Counted from the whole stretch's first letter, positions 1,686 through 19,458 are shown. The stretch is 63,533 nt of DNA, filler included, from Octopus bimaculoides (GCF_001194135.2; 5 parts of 5 records of this genome joined end to end with filler, not necessarily neighbours in it); one strand, 5' to 3'. Made by a program: numbers and translations. The notes: generated by a model not told the origin, from the sequence alone.

Positions 1686-2542
1686 TACAAGGGAAAGTCA
1701 CAAATTATATGCACCCTTGCTTCTGTAATTTATAAAAATAAAAGTAGTGATTGAACAACATCATTTTCCACATAGTCGCCTGGCTTTCCAATGCACTTCT
1801 AGTGGTCCATAAGTTTGTTTATACCATCGGAGGTTTTGGGTTGGTCGCGCAGCCATTTATGCACTGCTTAAATTCTATACTCTACCTTTTGGATTCTGGC
1901 TGGAAGTGATGGACCCAAGTCTCATATCCTGTGGCTATTCTCTCAAAAAAACTTCACTTTCATCACTGTAGCGGTTGAGTAAATGCTGACAGATCTCCAC
2001 ACATGGGCACAGATTTTACAGAAGTGAAGCTTTGTCGTAGATGATTTCGAATGCAGAACCATGACTAATTTGCAGAAAACATGCCACCTCATCGATGGTC
2101 ACTCGTCGGTTTGCCAGAACTATCTCTCAAGCTTGTTGAATCTTTATGCCAGTCGTGGAGATTGATGGGCATCCTACTCCCCATTCGTACTTCACGCTTT
2201 TCTGGCTATTTTTAAAATTCTCGATCCCCTCGTATACACTTCTGCGCGGTAGAGCGCTGTCTCCCGCATTGTACAGAAATCTTGCGATGAATTTCGGTCC
2301 CTGACACACCTCCAGAACAGAGAAATCGAATCACTGCTCTCTGTCCTCCTTTAGTGTACACTGCAAGGGAAGCAGCCATATTTACTCTGTAACACAAGAA
2401 AGAAAAGCGAAGTGATCAAAGTTGAACCTGGGTTACGTAGCCACAAGATTACCACATTTTAGCACGTGACCACTGATGGCAATGAGGCCAACCTAAAGAA
2501 AGTCATGGCGAAAGTGCGGGTAATTTTTGACTTCCCCAAGTA
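1686..2542 (-). mobile_element. Internally deleted mariner (Tc1/mariner) DNA transposon
   Basis: 29-bp terminal inverted repeats beginning with TA (TACAAGGGAAAGTCACAAATTATATGCAC at 1686; reverse complement of the right end TACTTGGGGAAGTCAAAAATTACCCGCAC; 22/29 match). Frameshifted transposase pieces: QRAVIRFL, ALPRRSVYEGIENFKN, WVHHFQPESKR, and C-terminal HKWLRDQPK / GDYVE. Confidence 0.88.
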
Positions 2543-6581: not shown

Positions 6582-6733
6582 TACAATCTGAGTTCAAATT
6601 CCACAAAGTCGGCTTTGTCTTGCCTCCTGTCAGGATCGATAAAATAAGTACCGGTCTGGTACTAGGATCGATGTAATAGACTACATCCCCCACCGCACCA
6701 AAATTTCAGGCTTTGTTTCTATAGTAGCAAGAA
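6582..6733 (+). mobile_element. SINE family 2, partial degenerate copy
   Basis: CTGAGTTCAAATTCC B-box segment and GATAAAATAAGTACC core, shared with the 57650 copy. Confidence 0.7.
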
Positions 6734-7756
6734 TTGTTACTACTATTATGTTTTGGTTTTGCTTTAATCTATATGAGTTGCACCGGTCTCAACCAGAGAC
6801 TGCTACCATCACCCACTCGATACAAGTCTCATCAGTCTTATTCTACTGATGAAGAAATGTGTTCCAATGAAACTACTGATGCTATGGAAGGGAGCACGAG
6901 AAAAATTCCAAAGTGGCCATCCATTCTGAAAGAAAGTTCACAACGATATTTAACTCTTTAGTCTTCAGATTACTCTGTCAAATGCAATACTTACTTTTTG
7001 TCGTTCATTGCTCGAAATAAAGAGTAGAAGGACAGCCAACAACTGATGGAGAGTCGTTTTTGATGTTACTTGTCTTATTTTCCATTGTTTCTCTCGTTCT
7101 TTGCGTACTCAGCGTTATTTACGTATTTCATGTTGTTTACATTTTGTGACGTCCTGTACACATATATGCATACCTATATAGACATACCTATATAGATACA
7201 TATGTATGTATATACATATATANNNNNNNNNNNNNNNNNNNNNNNNNNNNNNNNNNNNNNNNNNNNNNNNNNNNNNNNNNNNNNNNNNNNNNNNNNNNNN
7301 NNNNNNNNNNNNNNNNNNNNNNNNNNNNNNNNNNNNNNNNNNNNNNNNNNNNNNNNNNNNNNNNNNNNNNNNNNNNNNNNNNNNNNNNNNNNNNNNNNNN
7401 NNNNNNNNNNNNNNNNNNNNNNNNNNNNNNNNNNNNNNNNNNNNNNNNNNNNNNNNNNNNNNNNNNNNNNNNNNNNNNNNNNNNNNNNNNNNNNNNNNNN
7501 NNNNNNNNNNNNNNNNNNNNNNNNNNNNNNNNNNNNNNNNNNNNNNNNNNNNNNNNNNNNNNNNNNNNNNNNNNNNNNNNNNNNNNNNNNNNNNNNNNNN
7601 NNNNNNNNNNNNNNNNNNNNNNNNNNNNNNNNNNNNNNNNNNNNNNNNNNNNNNNNNNNNNNNNNNNNNNNNNNNNNNNNNNNNNNNNNNNNNNNNNNNN
7701 NNNNNNNNNNNNNNNNNNNNNNNNNNNNNNNNNNNNNNNNNNNNNNNNNNNNNNNN

Positions 7757-8065: not shown

Positions 8066-8330
8066 TCTACATGTATATATACATACATATAAATTAGAAA
8101 TGGAAACTAAAACAATAAATTAGACAATTAAATAATTTAATCATTAAATGATAAAGTCAATTTAATTGATTTATTTTATACAAACAAATGACACATCTCA
8201 TAAATTACTGCTGCTTCCATTCCATTAATAAAAACAAGAATAATAAGATACCGTTTAAATATAATGAAGTTTCATCAGATCGACATATCTGCTCAAAATA
8301 TCTATATATTTGTGTGTCAGTGCTTGCCTT

Positions 8331-8519
8331 CCACCACCATCGCTTGACAACCAATGTTGGTGCGTTTACGTCACCGTAAATTAACCGTTCGGCAAAAGAT
8401 CCCAATAGAATAAGTACTACGCTTACAAAAAATAAGTCCTGAGTCGATTTCTTTTTCGACTAAAGGCGATGCTCTAGCATGGGCGCAGTCGAATGACTGA
8501 AACAAGTCAAAGAATAAAA
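8331..8519 (+). mobile_element. SINE family 1, 3' half
   Basis: CCACCACCATCGCTTGACAACC...AATGACTGAAACAAG matches the 3' half of the 62526-62903 copy. Confidence 0.8.
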
Positions 8520-8552: not shown

Positions 8553-8586
<34 letters not shown>

Positions 8587-8675
8587 CAATTAAATAATTT
8601 AATCATTAAATGATAAAGTCAATTTAATTGATTTATTTTATACAAACAAATGACACATCTCATAGGAGATGGAGT

Positions 8676-8855: not shown

Positions 8856-9728
8856 NNNNNNNNNNNNNNNNNNNNNNNNNNNNNNNNNNNNNNNNNNNNN
8901 NNNNNNNNNNNNNNNNNNNNNNNNNNNNNNNNNNNNNNNNNNNNNNNNNNNNNNNNNNNNNNNNNNNNNNNNNNNNNNNNNNNNNNNNNNNNNNNNNNNN
9001 NNNNNNNNNNNNNNNNNNNNNNNNNNNNNNNNNNNNNNNNNNNNNNNNNNNNNNNNNNNNNNNNNNNNNNNNNNNNNNNNNNNNNNNNNNNNNNNNNNNN
9101 NNNNNNNNNNNNNNNNNNNNNNNNNNNNNNNNNNNNNNNNNNNNNNNNNNNNNNNNNNNNNNNNNNNNNNNNNNNNNNNNNNNNNNNNNNNNNNNNNNNN
9201 NNNNNNNNNNNNNNNNNNNNNNNNNNNNNNNNNNNNNNNNNNNNNNNNNNNNNNNNNNNNNNNNNNNNNNNNNNNNNNNNNNNNNNNNNNNNNNNNNNNN
9301 NNNNNNNNNNNNNNNNNNNNNNNNNNNNNNNNNNNNNNNNNNNNNNNNNNNNNNNNNNNNNNNNNNNNNNNNNNNNNNNNNNNNNNNNNNNNNNNNNNNN
9401 NNNNNNNNNNNNNNNNNNNNNNNNNNNNNNNNNNNNNNNNNNNNNNNNNNNNNNNNNNNNNNNNNNNNNNNNNNNNNNNNNNNNNNNNNNNNNNNNNNNN
9501 NNNNNNNNNNNNNNNNNNNNNNNNNNNNNNNNNNNNNNNNNNNNNNNNNNNNNNNNNNNNNNNNNNNNNNNNNNNNNNNNNNNNNNNNNNNNNNNNNNNN
9601 NNNNNNNNNNNNNNNNNNNNNNNNNNNNNNNNNNNNNNNNNNNNNNNNNNNNNNNNNNNNNNNNNNNNNNNNNNNNNNNNNNNNNNNNNNNNNNNNNNNN
9701 NNNNNNNNNNNNNNNNNNNNNTATATAT

Positions 9729-9816
9729 CCTTTTATGTCTCAGTCATTTGACTCTGGGCATGCTGGAGCACCGCCTTTAGTTGAACAAATTGACCGCAGG
9801 ACTTATTCTTTGTAAG
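9729..9816 (-). mobile_element. SINE family 1, 3' fragment
   Basis: Reverse complement of the family 1 tail (CAGTCATTTGAC...GCTGGAGCACCGCCTTTAG). Confidence 0.7.
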
Positions 9817-10246
9817 CAAAAGAAAGATGGACGGTGGTCACGTGTGAGCAACGTGAGAGAGGAAAAAGAGAAAGACGGGGAGAGAGAGAGACAGCTAGAA
9901 AACGGTCAAGGGGAGAAAAAGGGAATGAGAGAAGGATGGGAAAGAAAACAGTATAGAGTAGATTCACATCAAAAAGATTAAGATAGACTAATTTGGAAAT
10001 GGATGCGTGACGTTCCATTAAATAAGTAATATATATGTGTGTGTATATATATATTTGCATATATGGATACAGGACGTCACCAATTGCGTAAACAACATGA
10101 GTGCGAAAACAAACGAGTTAAATACGCAAACAACGATATACATATATATGTATATATATATACATGATGTATGTATATATATGTGTATATATATGTGTGT
10201 ATTTATATATATATACACACATATACATATATATGTATATATAAAC

Positions 10247-12520: not shown

Positions 12521-12542
12521 TGCTGAATATTATTTTTATTAA

Positions 12543-12986
12543 GTGAGAGAACAGTGCATGCCATCAAAATGATGCTAGGATACAAATATACGAAGCCCAA
12601 TATACCCATCATGACTAACCGCCTGAAAAGCGTACATCAGGCACATGCATCACTACCATATGTGCGCGATGTGGTGATCTCATATCAAGATGAACAGCGT
12701 TTGACTTTGCAAGTGGGGACCAATTAGAATTTTCTTTAGGTCGAGTAGCCTATACCGCTCAAAAGGTCCCTGGATAAGGGTTGTTTATCCTCACCACTAC
12801 TCCTGCTCGTGATCAGAGATGCACGTATCATCAGCCACTAAGGGTTACGATCAAGTAACTGACAAGCAAATCTGAGGTATTGAGCGTATATTTGTTGTAG
12901 CCCATCTTTTACACCAAGATAATAACACTTTCAATCTGTACAGATCAGAAGCCATAAGAGCCACTGCCTTGTACTGCATCAAGGCA
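12543..12986 (-). mobile_element. Family A non-coding retroposon, copy 1 (internal deletion of ~100 bp)
   Basis: Homologous to 13402-13945 and 17100-17654 with the same 5' end; flanked by ATT/GTT repeats. Confidence 0.85.
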
Positions 12987-13055
12987 ATTGTTACCATTAT
13001 TATTGTTGTTGTTGTTGTTATCTTCATCATCGTCATCATCATCATCATTATTATT

Positions 13056-13132
<77 letters not shown>

Positions 13133-13134
13133 AA

Positions 13135-13351
13135 GGCAGCTAACTGACAGAATAGTTGGCAGGCTGGGCGAAATGCTTGATAGTATTTCGTCTGTCTTCA
13201 CGTTCTGGTTTCAATTTCCGCCGAGGTCGACTTTACCTTTAATCCTCGCTGCGTCGATAAAATAAGTACTAGTTGAACACTGGGGTGGATATGATCAACT
13301 TACCCTCTACCCCTGAACTTGCTGGCATTATGTCAAAATTTGAAATGATCA
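13135..13351 (+). mobile_element. SINE family 2 copy
   Basis: GGCAGCTAACTGACAGAA head, GAGGTCGACTTT, GTCGATAAAATAAGTAC core; ends in (ATT)n. Confidence 0.8.
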
Positions 13352-13357
13352 TTATTA

Positions 13358-13401
<44 letters not shown>

Positions 13402-13945
13402 GAATAAGAGGGCATTGCATGCCATCAAAGTGACACTGGGGGACAATTATACGAAGCCCAGTATACCCGTCATGACTACCCATTTAATAAGGGTACACCA
13501 AACACATGCATCACAACCATATGTGAGTGACATGCTGAGTTCATTAAGATAAACAGCGCATAGCCTTGCAAGTGGGGACCAGTTAAAATTTTCTTCAGGT
13601 CGAGTAGACCACCCTGCTCAAAAGGTCCCTGAACGAAACAGCCGTGTTTCCAGAGATGAATTATTCAAATCTCAGGGAATTCCTCTCAACACATGGCTAT
13701 GATGCTCACCCACTACTTCTCCTCGTGATCACAGATGCACATATCGTCAGCCACCAAAGGACATACTCAACTGGTTATGGTCAAGCAACTGACAAGCAAA
13801 TCTGTATAACCGAACAGAATATTTTCTCTAGCCTATCTGTTATACCAAGACAAAACATGTACATGATAACACTCCAATCAATTAAGATCAGAAGCCATGA
13901 CATCCAGAATCTAAGATAGCCAGTGCCTGGTACTGCATCAGGGCA
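13402..13945 (-). mobile_element. Family A non-coding retroposon, copy 2
   Basis: Near full-length match to 17100-17654; (AAT)n tail on the minus strand at ~13350-13401. Confidence 0.88.
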
Positions 13946-13972
13946 TTTGTTGTTATTGTTGTTGTTGTTGTT

Positions 13973-14810
13973 ATTTTATGTTTGACTTTTGCTTTGCATT
14001 TGTACAAGTTGGCTTCAAGTCTCACCCAGAGACCTCAAGGGACAAGTTAGGACAGGGGTGGGGAAACTATTTAGTGCGGCGGGCAAAAATTTTGAATGAA
14101 AAAGACCCGCGGGCGGACCAAAAATTCTAACACTTATATCTCTGTAAATCTTGGATATATCCATGTATAATTTGATATGCATTAATAAAGATAAGTTTAA
14201 CACATTAAATTAACGCGTAACATCTTCATTAACACCACCACTGAATTTAGGACGTTTATATAACTTATGGGGTATTCATGTTTTTCAGCTAGAGTGTAGT
14301 TGGGTCTCAAGGGGATGGTACAAACCTAGCAATATGTGTTTTGTTGTGAAAATAAATTTTCCATTCAAATGGCAATTACTGGACGATTTCTGTTCGAGTG
14401 TAACCGTTTTAAGTCGCAGTGGAAACGAGGCCTATGTCGCAAATAGGCATACGAATATTGTATAAATTTTATAATTGAAAAATTTATTATATTTTGTACA
14501 CACGAATATATCGGCCAGCGGGTGCAACAGAATGAGCGGGCGGGAGTTTCCCCACTCCTGAGCTAGAAGTTCAAGTTGGTGTTATGACTAGCGTGACATA
14601 TATTTTGCTTTTGCACAGAGTATTGTTCTAGAAAATCTCTGTCTAAACAAAAGAAAATTAGAAGTTTGTATTAAAAATAACTATATTATTATTGTTATTA
14701 TTCGATTCAAGCATGTTACATGGTTCCACGCGAACCAATCTTGCGACATTGTCATGTTTTCTCTTAAATTCTCTCTGTGCCAATTTGCTGCATTCCCTTA
14801 AATAAGTTTT
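13973..14810 (-). mobile_element. Deleted R4/Dong-type retrotransposon remnant (family B 3' end plus coding fragment), interrupted by a hAT MITE
   Basis: 13973-14052 and 14561-~14640 match 19268-19400. 14700-14800 encodes RECSKLAQREFKRKHDNVARLV, resembling the C..LA...Y..RHD.VA motif of RLE elements. Confidence 0.65.
14053..14560. mobile_element. hAT (Charlie-like) MITE, 508 bp
   Basis: TIRs CAGGGGTGGGGAAACT and (reverse complement) CAGGAGTGGGGAAACT. 8-bp flanks AGTTAGGA / AGCTAGAA each differ by one base from the uninterrupted site AGTTAGAA at 19342-19349. Confidence 0.88.
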
Positions 14811-15232
14811 TGTTGCTTTTGTTGTTATTAATGCCATCACTGTCGTCATGGTCGTAATCAATCTTCATTATTATCAATAATATTAATACGCCAATTAGTT
14901 TTTTGTACGTAACTGATGCGTGTGTCACGCTTAAGAGAAAGAAATTGTTGAAAGAAATTTTGTTGCTTACATAAAATTTTTTAACTAGATGTCTTGTAAT
15001 TTCTGGAAGAGATTTGAAATTACCACCTACTTGTCAACACCCATGCCTACGAGGACACCGAAACAGCAACAAGCTTAATGAGAAAATTAAGATACTTAAA
15101 TTTAATGCGTGTGTCGAGCAAGGGAGAGAGGAAGTGAGAGAGGAAGAGAGAGAGTGAGAGGGGTGATTGATAGGTATTTGAATTCCTTTCTACGACTGAA
15201 CTGAAATTGACTCCTGGCTATTAAAGGCCCAG

Positions 15233-15282
<50 letters not shown>

Positions 15283-15766
15283 TTGTTTTAGGTCTTCTAC
15301 CCATTTGAATTCGGTCATACACCAGATAACATGTTAAGTCTTATGTTCCGAAATTTAAATTTTTAATTTGTGTTAATTATAGAATTACACTTCAGCTAAA
15401 AAAAACATCTTTTGGCTTTCGAATACAACTTTTTCTTTCTCTTTCTATATCTTTTGTTAAGTTAGAATTTCTCTGTTTTGGTTAGGATTTTTGAAATTAC
15501 ATTTTTCTTGCATCAAGCAATTGACGAAAACATAAAAAAAAATTAAATTCATAGAGCCGAACAAAATCAAAAATATCAATTCTATTTTTTCCCTTTACTT
15601 TACTTTCATACAATATAATTACCGTACCCTATATACTGTGTCCTTGCATATTGGATGAGAATCTCAGAAATATTTTCACCTTTTAAACAAAAACTGTCTA
15701 ATACATTCGTATATGTTTTTCAATTGAAACACTCAGAATCATTTTGGAGATTTATTGTTTTAATAA

Positions 15767-16075
15767 CAAGTCTTAAAATATGGAGAGCGTCAGCGTAGAA
15801 GGAGAGAACGGTTGTGCGAGGAACAGAGGGAGGAAATAAGGAATCAATATCGCGCGAGGATAAGACAGAGAAGAAACGAAATAAGCCAAGAGGAGAGGGA
15901 GCGTATCCTACGGCATAGGAGGGAAAGAAATCAGCAAAGGACAAAACAAATGAGCCAGGACCAAAGCGAAGTGTGTTTTCAAAATAAGAGAGTTAGAGAT
16001 CAACAGAATCGAGAACGCATGAGTCAAGAGCAAGTGCAGCTGTACTTAGAAAGTATGAGAAACAGAGCTGGGTTT
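15767..16075 (+). pseudogene. Open frame with 23-residue charged helical repeats (STPR-like; Helitron-associated or host exon)
   Basis: EEQREEIRNQYRARIRQRRNEIS / QEERERILRHRRERNQQRTKQMS / QDQSEVCFQNKRVRDQQNRERMS are each exactly 23 aa, with partial repeats on both sides. Confidence 0.55.
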
Positions 16076-16157
16076 CTCACGGCATACCAGCAAACCACAA
16101 AATCGCACCAGCTAGCATCACCACCACCTCCAATCTCGTCATATATATATGTGTGTG

Positions 16158-16199
<42 letters not shown>

Positions 16200-16259
16200 C
16201 GTGTGTGTGTATGTGTGTATTTATGTGCATTTGTGTCTGTTTGTCCCCCACCACCATTG

Positions 16260-16395
16260 ATATGAGATCACCATGTCACCCACATATGGTTGTGATGCAT
16301 GTACCTGGTGTACCCTTATCAGACGGATAGTAATGATGGGTATACTGGGCTTCGTATATTTTACCCCAGTGCCACTTTGATGGCATACACTGCTC

Positions 16396-16443
<48 letters not shown>
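16260..16443 (+). mobile_element. 5'-truncated family A copy with (AAT)n tail, inserted into a SINE family 1 tail
   Basis: 16260-16395 equals the 3' ~136 bp of family A, followed by (AAT)16. Host SINE sequence CCACCACCATTG resumes as GCTTGATAACC after the tail. Confidence 0.85.
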
Positions 16444-16444
<1 letters not shown>

Positions 16445-16767
16445 CTTGATAACCGATCTTAGTGTGTTTGCGTCCCTGTAGCTTAGCTGTTCAGCACAAG
16501 AAAGTGATAGAATAAGCACCAGGCTTACAGTGAATAAGTCCAGGGGTCAATTTCTTCGACTAAAGGGTGGTGCTCCAGTATGGCCACCGTCAAATGACTG
16601 AAACAAGTAAAAGAATTAAAAAATACGTGAAAAACGTTCCGTACCACTAAACCAAGAAGGTGCTCTGAATTTAAGGCTAAATAGTAATTTTGCTTATGTT
16701 ACCGTAACTGAGATATATAGTTATCGGTTTTACACTTCTTTCTATATTCTGTAACTGTTGCAATATA

Positions 16768-16981
16768 CTTTTCTACTATAGGCACAAGTCTTGAAATTTT
16801 GTGGGGGAGGGAGCCAGTCAACTAGATCGACCCCAGTACGCAGCTGGTACTTAATTTATCGACACTGAAAGGATGAACGGCAAAGTCGACCTCGGCAGAA
16901 TTTGAACTCAGAACGTAGACAGACGAAATACCGCTAAGCATTTCGCCCAGCGTGCTAACGATTCTGCCAGCAGGCTGCCTT
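16768..16981 (-). mobile_element. SINE family 2 copy with degenerate 16-bp TSD
   Basis: Full family 2 body; flanks TAACTGTTGCAATATA (16752-16767) and TAACTGTCACAATATA (16982-16997). Confidence 0.88.
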
Positions 16982-17099
16982 TAACTGTCACAATATAAAA
17001 ACATTTCTAATGGCACCAGCACACAATTTACAGATGCTTACATTTTTTATATTTTCCATGAATTTTTCACAGCTCCAGCAAGTTACTATTATTATTATT

Positions 17100-17653
17100 G
17101 AGTGAGAGAGCAGCGCATGCCATCAAAGTGACACTGATGTACAATTATACGAAGCCCAATATGCCCATCATTACTACCCGTCTGATAAAGGTACACCAGG
17201 CACATGCATCACGACCACATGTGCGCAACATGGTGATCTTATATCAAGATAAATAGCGCACGACCTTGCAGGTGGGGCCCAGTTAGAATTTTTTCAGGTT
17301 GAATAGCCCATCCTGCTCAAAAGGTCCTTGAATAAGGTTTGTTTAAGGATGATGAACAAAACACCCGTGTTTCCAAAGGTGAATTATTCAAACCCCAAAG
17401 AATTCTTCTCAACACATGGCTATGATGCTCCCCCACTACTTCTGCACGTGATTAGAGATGCACATAACATCATCCATTAAGGGACATGCTCAACTGGTTA
17501 CAGTCAAGCAACTGACAAGCAAATCTGTGGTATTGAGTAGAATGTTTTCTGTAGCCCATCTTCTATACCAAGACAAAACAATGTACATGATAACACTTCC
17601 AATCAGTTAAGATCAGAAGCCATGAGAGCCACTGCCTAGTATTGCATCAGGGC

Positions 17654-17654
<1 letters not shown>
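17100..17654 (-). mobile_element. Family A non-coding retroposon, copy 3 (555 bp, apparently complete)
   Basis: Same ends as copies 1 and 2; sits between two ATT tracts. Confidence 0.9.
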
Positions 17655-17735
<81 letters not shown>

Positions 17736-17738
<3 letters not shown>

Positions 17739-19210
17739 TACTTTCAACCTGCAAGTTTGATACAATCACTTGCCGAGATACACCTAGCGTCCTAGGGCGA
17801 ATGAAGGAAAAGAGATGTTACAGTATGACTGAAAGCTTGGGGAAGGGAAGTGGCAGAGGCAGTAGCGAAATATCTTCATGTAATACAACACTGACATTTA
17901 AACTCATCGGGTTTTACTAAGGATGTGGGTAGTATTTGTCAGCACAATCTTTTGAATTTCTCTGAGACATGGTTCTCCTGGGATATTATCTAGATGCTTT
18001 TGACACCCGTTTCTTATCATACCTAAGGCACCCACAATAACAGGAACAGTTCTCGCTTTAAGATGCCACTTCTCTTGTATTTCAATTTCCAGGTCCTTAT
18101 ATTTACTTAATTTGTCAATTTCCTTTACAGATATATTTTTATCTATTAGTCCACAGATATCTTCTTCCCAGTCTTTAATGACTCTGTCTGGTCAATTTTC
18201 CTGGATCGTTCTGTTGGTGTTGACTGGAAAATCCCAGAGGATAGTGACATTTTTACCTTCAACGACTGGCTCAGGATGATATTCATACCAGTAAGCAGTA
18301 GTGTTTACATATTTTCCAGTGTAAATACTGTCCGACACTATCGTGGTGATATTTGTATTCGTTTGCAGAACCTGCATTTAGAGTCATAACCGTTTTGAAG
18401 AACGCTAGCCTGGTAGTTTTTGGTAAGAGGGCTTTGGTCTTGTGCCGCCAATAGGAAACTTTCAGCCTCTGATTTCAGTCCTGACCTTCTCATCCACTTA
18501 TGGATTGTTACTTGGTCTAGCTCAGCATTTCGGGTTTGAAGTATATACTGTCTATGTAAAGGCTTCTGGCTCCATCGCTCCTCAATTTGTTTCTGCCCAT
18601 TCTTTTTGCAGTTTGTTTTATCTGTTTCGCTTGTTTGGAGGCAATGGTTTCAGATTTTTCACCTAATTCAGGGTTAATGCCAAGTTCCCTTGCGAATTTG
18701 CAAGCTTTCTTGACAATAGAATGTGATTTTCTGCTGCTTTCGTGTTTGCACATAGGCCGCAGCATCCAGTCCTCTGTACTAGATTAATAAATGTTCATTG
18801 ATATTGTGGGGGTCATAGCACAGTTCTACCTGCATCATTCCTCTACCCCCATTAGTTCTAAGTAGGTACAGACAATCAACGTCTATTTTGGGGCGGTGCA
18901 TGTTCTTAGATGTTAGTAGTTTTCTTGTCTTCCTGTTCAGGCGTTGGAGTTCTGTAAGATTCCAGTTAATGATGTTAAAACTGTATTGGACTACTGGAAG
19001 AGCCAGGGTGTTAATGGCTTCTATGCAACTTTTGGAGTTGAGTTCAGTTTGTAGTATGAGTTTTACTCTCCTGTAATACACGTTTCAGTTCAGTTTTTAG
19101 TATGAATTTTACTTTCCTGTATGATCCTTTCAGTTCATGAGTCTTACTCTCCTGTAATACCACTTTCGGTTCAGTTTGTAGTATGAGAGTTACTCTCCTG
19201 TAATACTCCT

Positions 19211-19212
<2 letters not shown>
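17736..19212 (-). mobile_element. 5'-truncated R4/Dong-clade non-LTR retrotransposon (RT C-terminus, RLE endonuclease, 3' UTR, (AAT)n tail)
   Basis: YYRRVKLILQTELN...AINTLALPVVQYSF...RKTRKLLT...LYLLRTNGGRGM; ILWDFPVNTNRTIQEN*PDRVIKD...KLSKYKDLEIEI...VPVIVGALG; ends EIQKIVLTNTTHILSKTR*. The R of the RPD motif is a stop (likely CGA>TGA). Confidence 0.9.
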
Positions 19213-19267
<55 letters not shown>

Positions 19268-19269
<2 letters not shown>

Positions 19270-19458
19270 TTATGTTTGACTTTTGTTTTGCATTTGTACA
19301 AGTTGGATCCAAGTCTCACCCAGAGACCTCAAGAGACAACAAGTTAGAAGTTCATGTAGGTGTTATGCCTAGGGTACCATATATTTGGATTTGTACAGTT
19401 TTGTTCAAGTGAATGTTTAAGAAACCATAAGAGAATTATGTGTTTGCTTTAAAATTTG
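19268..19458 (-). mobile_element. Family B 3' end (probable second R4/Dong subfamily), cut by an assembly spacer
   Basis: Matches 13973-14640; followed on the minus strand by (AAT)n at 19213-19267. Confidence 0.65.

Follow-up and report, generated by a model that had tools for sequence, protein, structure and literature searches.

A non-coding (TAA)n-tailed retroposon in mixed trains with Dong/R4-type elements in octopus DNA, and its possible dependence on the Dong machinery

Within a 63,533-nucleotide stretch of Octopus bimaculoides DNA (GCF_001194135.2; five parts joined end to end with filler), hereafter the window, we analysed a 19-kb piece in which a repeat that we call family A recurs within TAA microsatellite beside long interspersed nuclear elements (LINEs) of the Dong type. 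It is well supported that family A is a non-coding retroposon in its own right, with a (TAA)n tail and a constant 5' end, and that it stands in trains with Dong-type elements. The explanation we favour, with moderate confidence, is that A is a non-autonomous retroposon of ~555 bp copied by the machinery of a Dong/R4-type LINE.

Results

Copies A1 to A3 were delimited with BLAST and MAFFT, and an additional copy, A4, had been overlooked in an earlier note on this DNA:

12543-12986, minus strand: A1, 444 bp, with internal deletions
12526-12542, minus strand: degenerate tail of A1, TTAATAAAAATAATATT
13402-13945, minus strand: A2, 544 bp
17100-17654, minus strand: A3, 555 bp, the longest copy
16257-16395, plus strand: A4, 5'-truncated, the final 139 nt only
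16396-16443, plus strand: tail of A4, (AAT)16, 48 bp, pure

A1, A2 and A3 begin alike with TGCC(C/T)TGATGCA and finish alike in ...GGCATGCNCTG(C/T)TCTC(A/T)(C/T)T(C/T) followed by AAT repeats, confirming the coordinates and common ends that the earlier note had given for three copies. Their pairwise identity is 80-83% and is spread fairly evenly along the family (0.75-0.91), with a maximum in the first 120 nt and no special conservation of the 3' end.

The truncated copy is the most informative about how A moves. A4 and its tail interrupt another short interspersed nuclear element (SINE) between CCACCA and GCTTGA, giving CCACCACCA[TT..A4..(AAT)16]GCTTGATAACC, and the empty site is kept in a paralogous copy of that SINE at 8330-8350 (CCACCATCGCTTGA; the paralogous copy, at ~8330, reads CCACCACCATCGCTTGACAACC). 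The insertion changed the target by 0-2 bp and made no target duplication. Since the tail is absent from the empty site, (AAT)16 must have arrived with the element and belongs to A, and a tail that travels with the element implies an A RNA ending in (UAA)n. Copies truncated at the 5' end are a hallmark of target-primed reverse transcription, and A4, which is truncated in this way, tailed and matched by a known empty site, therefore identifies A as a retroposon made by that route: it has its own 3' tail, a truncated copy and an identifiable empty site. The lack of a long duplication at A4 fits elements with a restriction-like endonuclease (RLE) better than those with an apurinic/apyrimidinic-type endonuclease (APE).

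Family A appears to encode nothing. The earlier note had seen neither a coding relic nor a convincing tRNA B box in it, and both observations hold. Six-frame translation gave no frame consistently open across the copies, and a six-frame profile built from three A copies matched none of 5.8 billion proteins. ARAGORN and Rfam detected no tRNA, 5S, 7SL or snRNA head, and Rfam run on the 5' halves of A3 and A2 alone, with lax filters and E values up to 10, returned neither a small-RNA head nor a ribozyme. Each full-length copy has three runs of four T (T4) on the sense strand, two of which lie, by eye, at matching positions in different copies; such runs make full-length transcription by RNA polymerase III (Pol III) unlikely and, with the missing small-RNA head, make A an unlikely Pol III SINE. 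Folds of the 5' 120 nt and the 3' 140 nt had stability z-scores of -1.5 to +0.6, and RNAalifold drew a long hairpin in the 3' 140 nt with only one compensatory pair.

The full-length copies stand in two trains, in the company of a LINE fragment and of a second short repeat, family B, one copy of which is split by a miniature inverted-repeat transposable element (MITE). The features of the trains are as follows:

12987-13131, minus strand: composite microsatellite at the A1 5' end, (AAT)11-(GAT)n-(AAC)n on the minus strand
13351-13401, minus strand: tail of A2, (AAT)17
13946-13975, minus strand: (AAC/AAT)n, tail of B1 and 5' flank of A2
13976-14683, minus strand: B1, ~195 bp, split by a MITE; Dong-type 3' hairpin at 13999-14045
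14050-14563: MITE in B1, 514 bp, flanked by a TA target duplication; its 21-nt terminal inverted repeats are 86% complementary
14684-14702, minus strand: short AAT/AAC repeat at the B1 5' end
17087-17099, minus strand: tail of A3, short (AAT)4
17655-17736, minus strand: (TAA)27, tail of the Dong fragment and 5' flank of A3
17737-19213, minus strand: Dong/R4-type LINE, RLE-type, 5'-truncated and decayed
17737-17903, minus strand: 3' untranslated region (3'UTR) of the Dong fragment, with a conserved hairpin at 17757-17800
17907 to ~19084, minus strand: Dong reading-frame remnants (reverse transcriptase thumb, CCHC knuckle, RLE) with several frameshifts and stops
19214-19273, minus strand: (AAT)20, tail of B2 and 5' flank of the Dong fragment
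19274-19458, minus strand: B2, ending at the edge of the piece ~3 nt short of the B1 5' end; Dong-type hairpin at 19293-19336

Read on the minus strand, train 1 runs (AAT/AAC) - B1 - (AAC)n - A2 - (AAT)17 - foreign SINE - (AAT)11(GAT)n(AAC)n - A1 - degenerate tail, and train 2 runs B2 - (AAT)20 - Dong - (TAA)27 - A3 - (AAT)4, which bears out the chain of B, Dong and A copies, each followed by AAT repeats, that had been described around A3. The microsatellite at 12987-13131 is probably the continuation of the A2 tail. The SINE between the two, judged by eye to have the opposite orientation, breaks an AAT array and was not carried in the train. The MITE in B1 looks like a Tc1/mariner (Stowaway-like) type, and its empty site is visible in B2 (14048-14565 with the TA duplication).

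The association with TAA repeats is close at both ends of A. Six pure arrays of at least four TAA units make up 1.5% of the bases in the 17.8 kb of non-N sequence of the piece, and each of the six lies, in the sense orientation, directly against the 3' end of a copy of A, B or Dong; for seven element ends to touch arrays that occupy so little of the sequence is far beyond chance. At the other end, AAT/AAC repeats immediately meet every full-length A copy, the 5' end of which (3/3) is flush after a complete (T/C)AA unit, as expected from the earlier description of A copies embedded in ATT/GTT microsatellite.

The LINE fragment in train 2 is inserted in (TAA)n and ends in it, with (AAT)20 upstream and (TAA)27 downstream. 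Its frame remnants show the thumb, a CRFC... motif and RLE motifs, and a stitched translation has 314 homologues, many with RVT_1 (PF00078) upstream. Pfam and single-sequence PDB searches with the decayed fragment gave no match. A profile of 32 homologues matched solved R2 proteins (E 3e-24), the alignment taking in the CCHC and PD..D..K segments, and the AlphaFold model (pLDDT 89) of an 83%-identical relative, P0001, has TM scores of 0.62-0.70 to R2 structures. Profile and fold searches thus agree with the earlier note that this neighbour of A encodes an RLE, with an R2-like thumb, CCHC knuckle and endonuclease. The closest relative of the fragment is on a 2.1-kb metagenome scaffold (L001; 78-83% DNA identity). 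We assign the fragment provisionally to R4/Dong on its target, its architecture and the published annotation of octopus Dong-R4 elements, the reverse transcriptase domain lying outside the window copy. Dong-R4 families are reported in octopus genomes (PMC13282606, PMC9115989), and (TAA)n, named in the earlier note as the target of Dong-type elements, is given in the literature as the Dong target in insects, molluscs and cnidarians (PMC7998251, PMC3812793). The first 173 bp of the window copy (19041-19213, minus strand), right after (AAT)20, are a 46-bp coding segment (..EYYRRVKLILQTELN..) repeated four times in tandem, which could have arisen at the 5' junction through slippage or a template jump, or by duplication at a later time.

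Similar trains are found where relatives of the fragment occur in other organisms (L001-L004). The 22-kb locus L002 (1-21914) holds seven Dong-like elements on one strand, which belong to different families and have 29-66% amino-acid identity to one another, (TAA)n beginning 90-150 bp past each stop codon, and six (TAA)n arrays on the plus strand with none on the minus. L001, L003 and L004 likewise have same-strand elements parted by (TAA)n, and the 3'UTRs of the relatives in L001-L007 end in (TAA)n. The earlier suggestion that each new tail recreates the target, and so builds trains, describes these loci well. Palindromic MITEs are also inserted into the arrays of the L003 and L004 trains. 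Candidate passenger families were sought in these two trains and rejected, their short units proving to be truncated Dong ends or palindromic MITEs.

A hairpin recurs in the 3'UTRs of these Dong relatives, 20-60 nt upstream of the tail, with the form GCC-YNA-GGNNNC-(loop, often TGGGT)-GNNNYY-Y-GGC, that is, an inner stem of 6 bp within an outer GCC/GGC helix. Seven seed hairpins were aligned:

L001, 484-527 and 2078-2121
L002, 11961-12003
L003, 6417-6460
L004, 11686-11729
L005 (Penaeus indicus), 9720-9763
L006 (Oculina patagonica), 9929-9972

In this alignment 95% of cells are paired and 12 are compensatory, with 0/500 shuffles as good and slid controls only 24-45% paired, figures that carry a selection in that the seeds were chosen by eye. 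The hairpin is present in about half of the 19 Dong 3'UTRs sampled. A covariance model, R1, built only from these Dong 3'UTRs of other loci, gave ten matches with E < 0.1 in 120 kb of other loci, all on the coding strand and all in Dong 3'UTRs; three were not seeds (15.9-25 bits), and no off-target match had E < 1 in the 120 kb. In the 19-kb piece, with filters off, R1 ranked the 3'UTR of the Dong fragment first (33 bits, E 4e-8), B2 second (20 bits, E 4.4e-4) and B1 third (13.2 bits, E 0.057), each at the right distance from its tail, the next match having E 0.46. Family B thus carries a Dong-type 3' end; it represents a short element with a Dong tail or, alternatively, a copy of Dong whose truncation falls inside the 3'UTR.

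Beyond the trains, the 19-kb piece is AT-rich eukaryotic DNA with dense short interspersed repeats and microsatellites, its SINE types seeming to resemble those of Octopus, and the following features were noted:

594-817, 7223-7756 and 8856-9721: runs of N, the three assembly gaps
~1900-2415, minus strand: decayed mariner-type transposase relic
8122-8202 and 8584-8664: perfect 81-bp direct repeat
13132-13350, plus strand: SINE, a repeat unrelated to A (the foreign SINE of train 1); further copies at 6587-6730 and 16780-16984
15767-16140, plus strand: open frame rich in R, E and Q

We take the repeat at 13132-13350 to be tRNA-SINE-like, its orientation being read by eye from motifs resembling A and B boxes and by comparison with octopus SINEs; Rfam and ARAGORN called no tRNA in it. 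The mariner-type relic, broken by frameshifts and stops, has an N-terminus resembling a helix-turn-helix (..QRAVIRFL..GVSGTEIHRKI..) and, further on, ..RRVTIDEVA..ISHGSAFEII... The 81-bp direct repeat encloses a 381-bp segment with a SINE tail and AT/AG microsatellites, and could be an artefact of assembly beside the gap at 8856 or else a target duplication of unusual length. The open frame at 15767-16140 (..EEQREEIRNQYRARIRQRRNEISQEERERILRHRRERNQQR..) leads into a (TG)n tract; its exact sequence is absent from the protein collection searched, as are ten open reading frames of the window.

Discussion

If A is copied by the Dong machinery, an A RNA ending in (UAA)n would be taken up by target-primed reverse transcription and would in most cases enter, in one constant orientation, a (TAA)n array already present, frequently the tail left by a previous insertion. 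A Dong/R4-type LINE would be the likeliest source of the enzyme, and its RLE would nick the (TTA)n strand so that the (UAA)n tail of the template could pair with the nicked end. With every insertion a new (TAA)n tail would arrive and rebuild the target, and mixed head-to-tail trains of Dong, B and A could grow within the microsatellite. We infer both the use of the Dong enzyme by A and the way in which A RNA is made; the Dong machinery is the most economical choice given the tail, the target, the orientation, the in-phase junctions, the absence of a duplication at A4 and the absence of any other LINE from the 19-kb piece. As for the RNA, neither promoter nor ribozyme was found, and transcription running on from train members upstream has to be seriously considered.

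Several results weigh against this explanation. A classical LINE-SINE pair has its 3' end in common, and R1 did not find the Dong hairpin in family A (best match 6.7 bits, E 6); local alignments of A with the window Dong 3'UTR, the L001 3'UTRs and family B were no better than shuffles (z ~0). The likeness of A to Dong ends, for which the earlier note had proposed a test, was not found in these comparisons with Dong 3'UTRs. The partner of A may come from another Dong subfamily, since about half of the sampled Dong 3'UTRs are without the hairpin. By eye, A has a longer hairpin closed by GCC..GGC and then ATTGTAC, which recalls the Dong layout, a post hoc resemblance that we do not count as evidence; ATTGTAC was also tried as a link to Dong and rejected, an unbiased k-mer test placing it in 4/19 Dong ends, within the range of shuffles.

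A second expectation concerned the 5' end. Bombyx Dong and Ascaris R4 have a tested ribozyme resembling that of hepatitis delta virus (HDV), which cuts exactly at the 5' junction (PMC3774820), making a ribozyme an attractive explanation for the fixed 5' end of A. The HDV-type search that the earlier note had proposed for this end drew a blank: Rfam found no such ribozyme over the whole 19-kb piece or in the 5' halves of A3 and A2, and a loose HDV-type descriptor, run without a positive control, gave no solution common to the three A copies and matched half of the shuffles. Rfam also missed the 5' ends of the full-length Dong relatives in L002 and, with the descriptor lacking a positive control, these negatives are weak.

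The sample adds to these difficulties, consisting of only four A copies, all from one 19-kb piece; exact-pattern scans with two conserved A motifs of JGI metagenomes, GTDB genomes and IMG/VR found no further copy. The short TAA-bounded units of L002-L004 are severely truncated Dong ends or MITEs. Copy A4 lies outside any TAA array, at a site without a TAA repeat, from which it follows that the arrays are preferred and not required. Tails of TAA repeats, finally, are not confined to Dong, the I element having them too (PMC3747384). Of the earlier proposal that A is a passenger of Dong, it stands that A is a separate retroposon with its own tail, sharing TAA arrays and orientation with Dong-type elements. 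A common 3' module was not found, and the link of A to Dong rests on their agreement in tail, target and orientation.

The last two difficulties, together with the lack in A of the Dong 3' hairpin and of similarity to the Dong 3'UTR, would suit a partnership with a different LINE with (TAA)n ends, such as an I-like or APE-type element, A lying near Dong only because both produce TAA-rich tails and afterwards insert into them. We regard this as possible but unlikely, as the 19-kb piece holds no I-like or other non-Dong TAA-tailed LINE, A4 lacks a target duplication, the three full-length 5' ends are flush and in phase with (T/C)AA repeats, and the A copies are co-oriented with Dong-type ends.

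It is rather unlikely that A is instead a downstream segment carried by Dong-type elements, whether by 3' transduction or as part of a long two-part 3' region with an internal (TAA)n, in which case the apparent common 5' end would come from reverse transcripts joined at the internal repeat. Such carriage would account for two of the three full-length A copies standing directly downstream of a Dong-type 3' end and its (TAA/CAA)n array (B1-A2 and Dong-A3), and for the missing promoter-like head and ribozyme. It could also account for the (AAC)n-rich 5' flank that A1 and A2 share, beyond the first 28 nt of A (12959-13021 versus 13918-13974, 82% over 63 nt), unlike that of A3, which is pure (TAA)27; this flank reflects either parallel mutation of the arrays or an upstream repeat copied along with A. 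However, each of the three arrays has something else upstream of it (the Dong 3'UTR, family B or the A2 tail), and the Dong hairpin lies ~20 nt from (TAA)27, as in relatives whose tails precede other elements, so that (TAA)27 is the tail of Dong itself. Nor were the pairs copied as one unit, B1 and B2 being 89% identical and A2 and A3 80%.

A further alternative, which we consider doubtful, keeps the Dong enzyme and makes A a mere (TAA)n-bounded cassette, in need of no promoter, ribozyme or LINE-derived recognition element, the absence of which from A would thereby be explained. A train would be transcribed as one RNA, the Dong enzyme would prime wherever (UAA)n pairs with the nicked (TTA)n, and the cDNA would be joined at the next upstream (UAA)n through microhomology of the repeats. 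Whatever sequence happened to be enclosed by two arrays, provided that its train was transcribed, might in this way multiply as a discrete family with a seemingly fixed 5' end.

Segmental or tandem duplication of a microsatellite-rich block, suggested by the similar order B - array - A in both clusters, is very improbable as the origin of the copies and already contradicted: the flanks beyond the arrays are unrelated, nearby copies of the common SINE are oppositely oriented, and the divergence of the element pairs is unequal, so that neither cluster is a duplicate of the other. A4, for its part, is cleanly inserted, and its empty site can be identified.

If copying by the Dong machinery is correct, A would be the non-autonomous companion of an RLE LINE that targets a microsatellite. 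The searchable literature yielded no description of a companion of this kind, and A would stand apart from the short internally deleted elements (SIDEs) of R2 in having no recognisable parental ends. It would bear on template choice by R4/Dong elements, that is, on 3'UTR structure versus pairing of tail and target, and on the growth of TAA microsatellites into mixed trains of elements. Hundreds of unclassified SINE families, as well as Dong-R4 LINEs, are listed in surveys of octopus repeats (PMC13282606, PMC8967140, PMC9115989), and the origin of some of the former (PMC13282606) might be sought here. The covarying hairpin, common to Dong elements from a cephalopod-like source, shrimp and coral, is a candidate RNA element recognised by the enzyme and can serve in practice as a probe that separates Dong-derived from other TAA-tailed repeats.

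Comparison with known systems

The LINE fragment of the window resembles the (TAA)n-specific R4-clade LINEs Dong (Bombyx mori), DongAg and DongBg (PMC3812793, PMC7998251, PMC3774820) in its RLE architecture, its (TAA)n tail and target and its head-to-tail arrangement. Family A shares tail, target and orientation with Dong but encodes nothing. The 5' ribozyme of Bombyx Dong cleaves at the (TAA)n junction (PMC3774820), whereas none was found in A, and the Dong copy of the window is without its 5' end.

The (TAA)n tail has a parallel in the Drosophila I factor (I clade), in which it is carried by the RNA (PMC3747384). That element, in contrast to A, is autonomous, has an APE-type endonuclease and shows no specificity for (TAA)n targets, and no I-like LINE was seen in the 19-kb piece. 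L1 3' transduction resembles the read-through considered for A in copying downstream sequence past the end of an element, but it mobilises unique flanks, whereas A is a recurrent family that one and the same repeat bounds at either end.

Classical SINEs with a LINE-derived tail (Ohshima and Okada) and the LP-SINEs of molluscs (PMC4758252) are, like A, short and non-autonomous and carry the tandem-repeat tail of their partner, and LP-SINEs also resemble A in having no small-RNA head (PMC4758252). Family A differs from classical SINEs in having no tRNA, 5S or 7SL head, in its T4 runs, in having no LINE-derived part that we could find and in its length, 555 bp being at the long end.

A parallel in mechanism is provided by the R2 SIDEs (Eickbush and Eickbush 2012, PMC3414825), which, like A, are non-coding, a few hundred bp long and precise at the 5' end. 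They depend on a site-specific RLE LINE, insert at its target and spread by target-primed reverse transcription, as we propose for A. The R2 SIDEs keep the HDV-like 5' ribozyme and the 3'UTR of their parent, whereas searches of A detected no ribozyme and no Dong-like 3' module, and remnants of a parental LINE were not seen in A as an open frame, a six-frame protein match or similarity to the Dong family of the window. The target of the R2 SIDEs is ribosomal DNA; that of A is a microsatellite.

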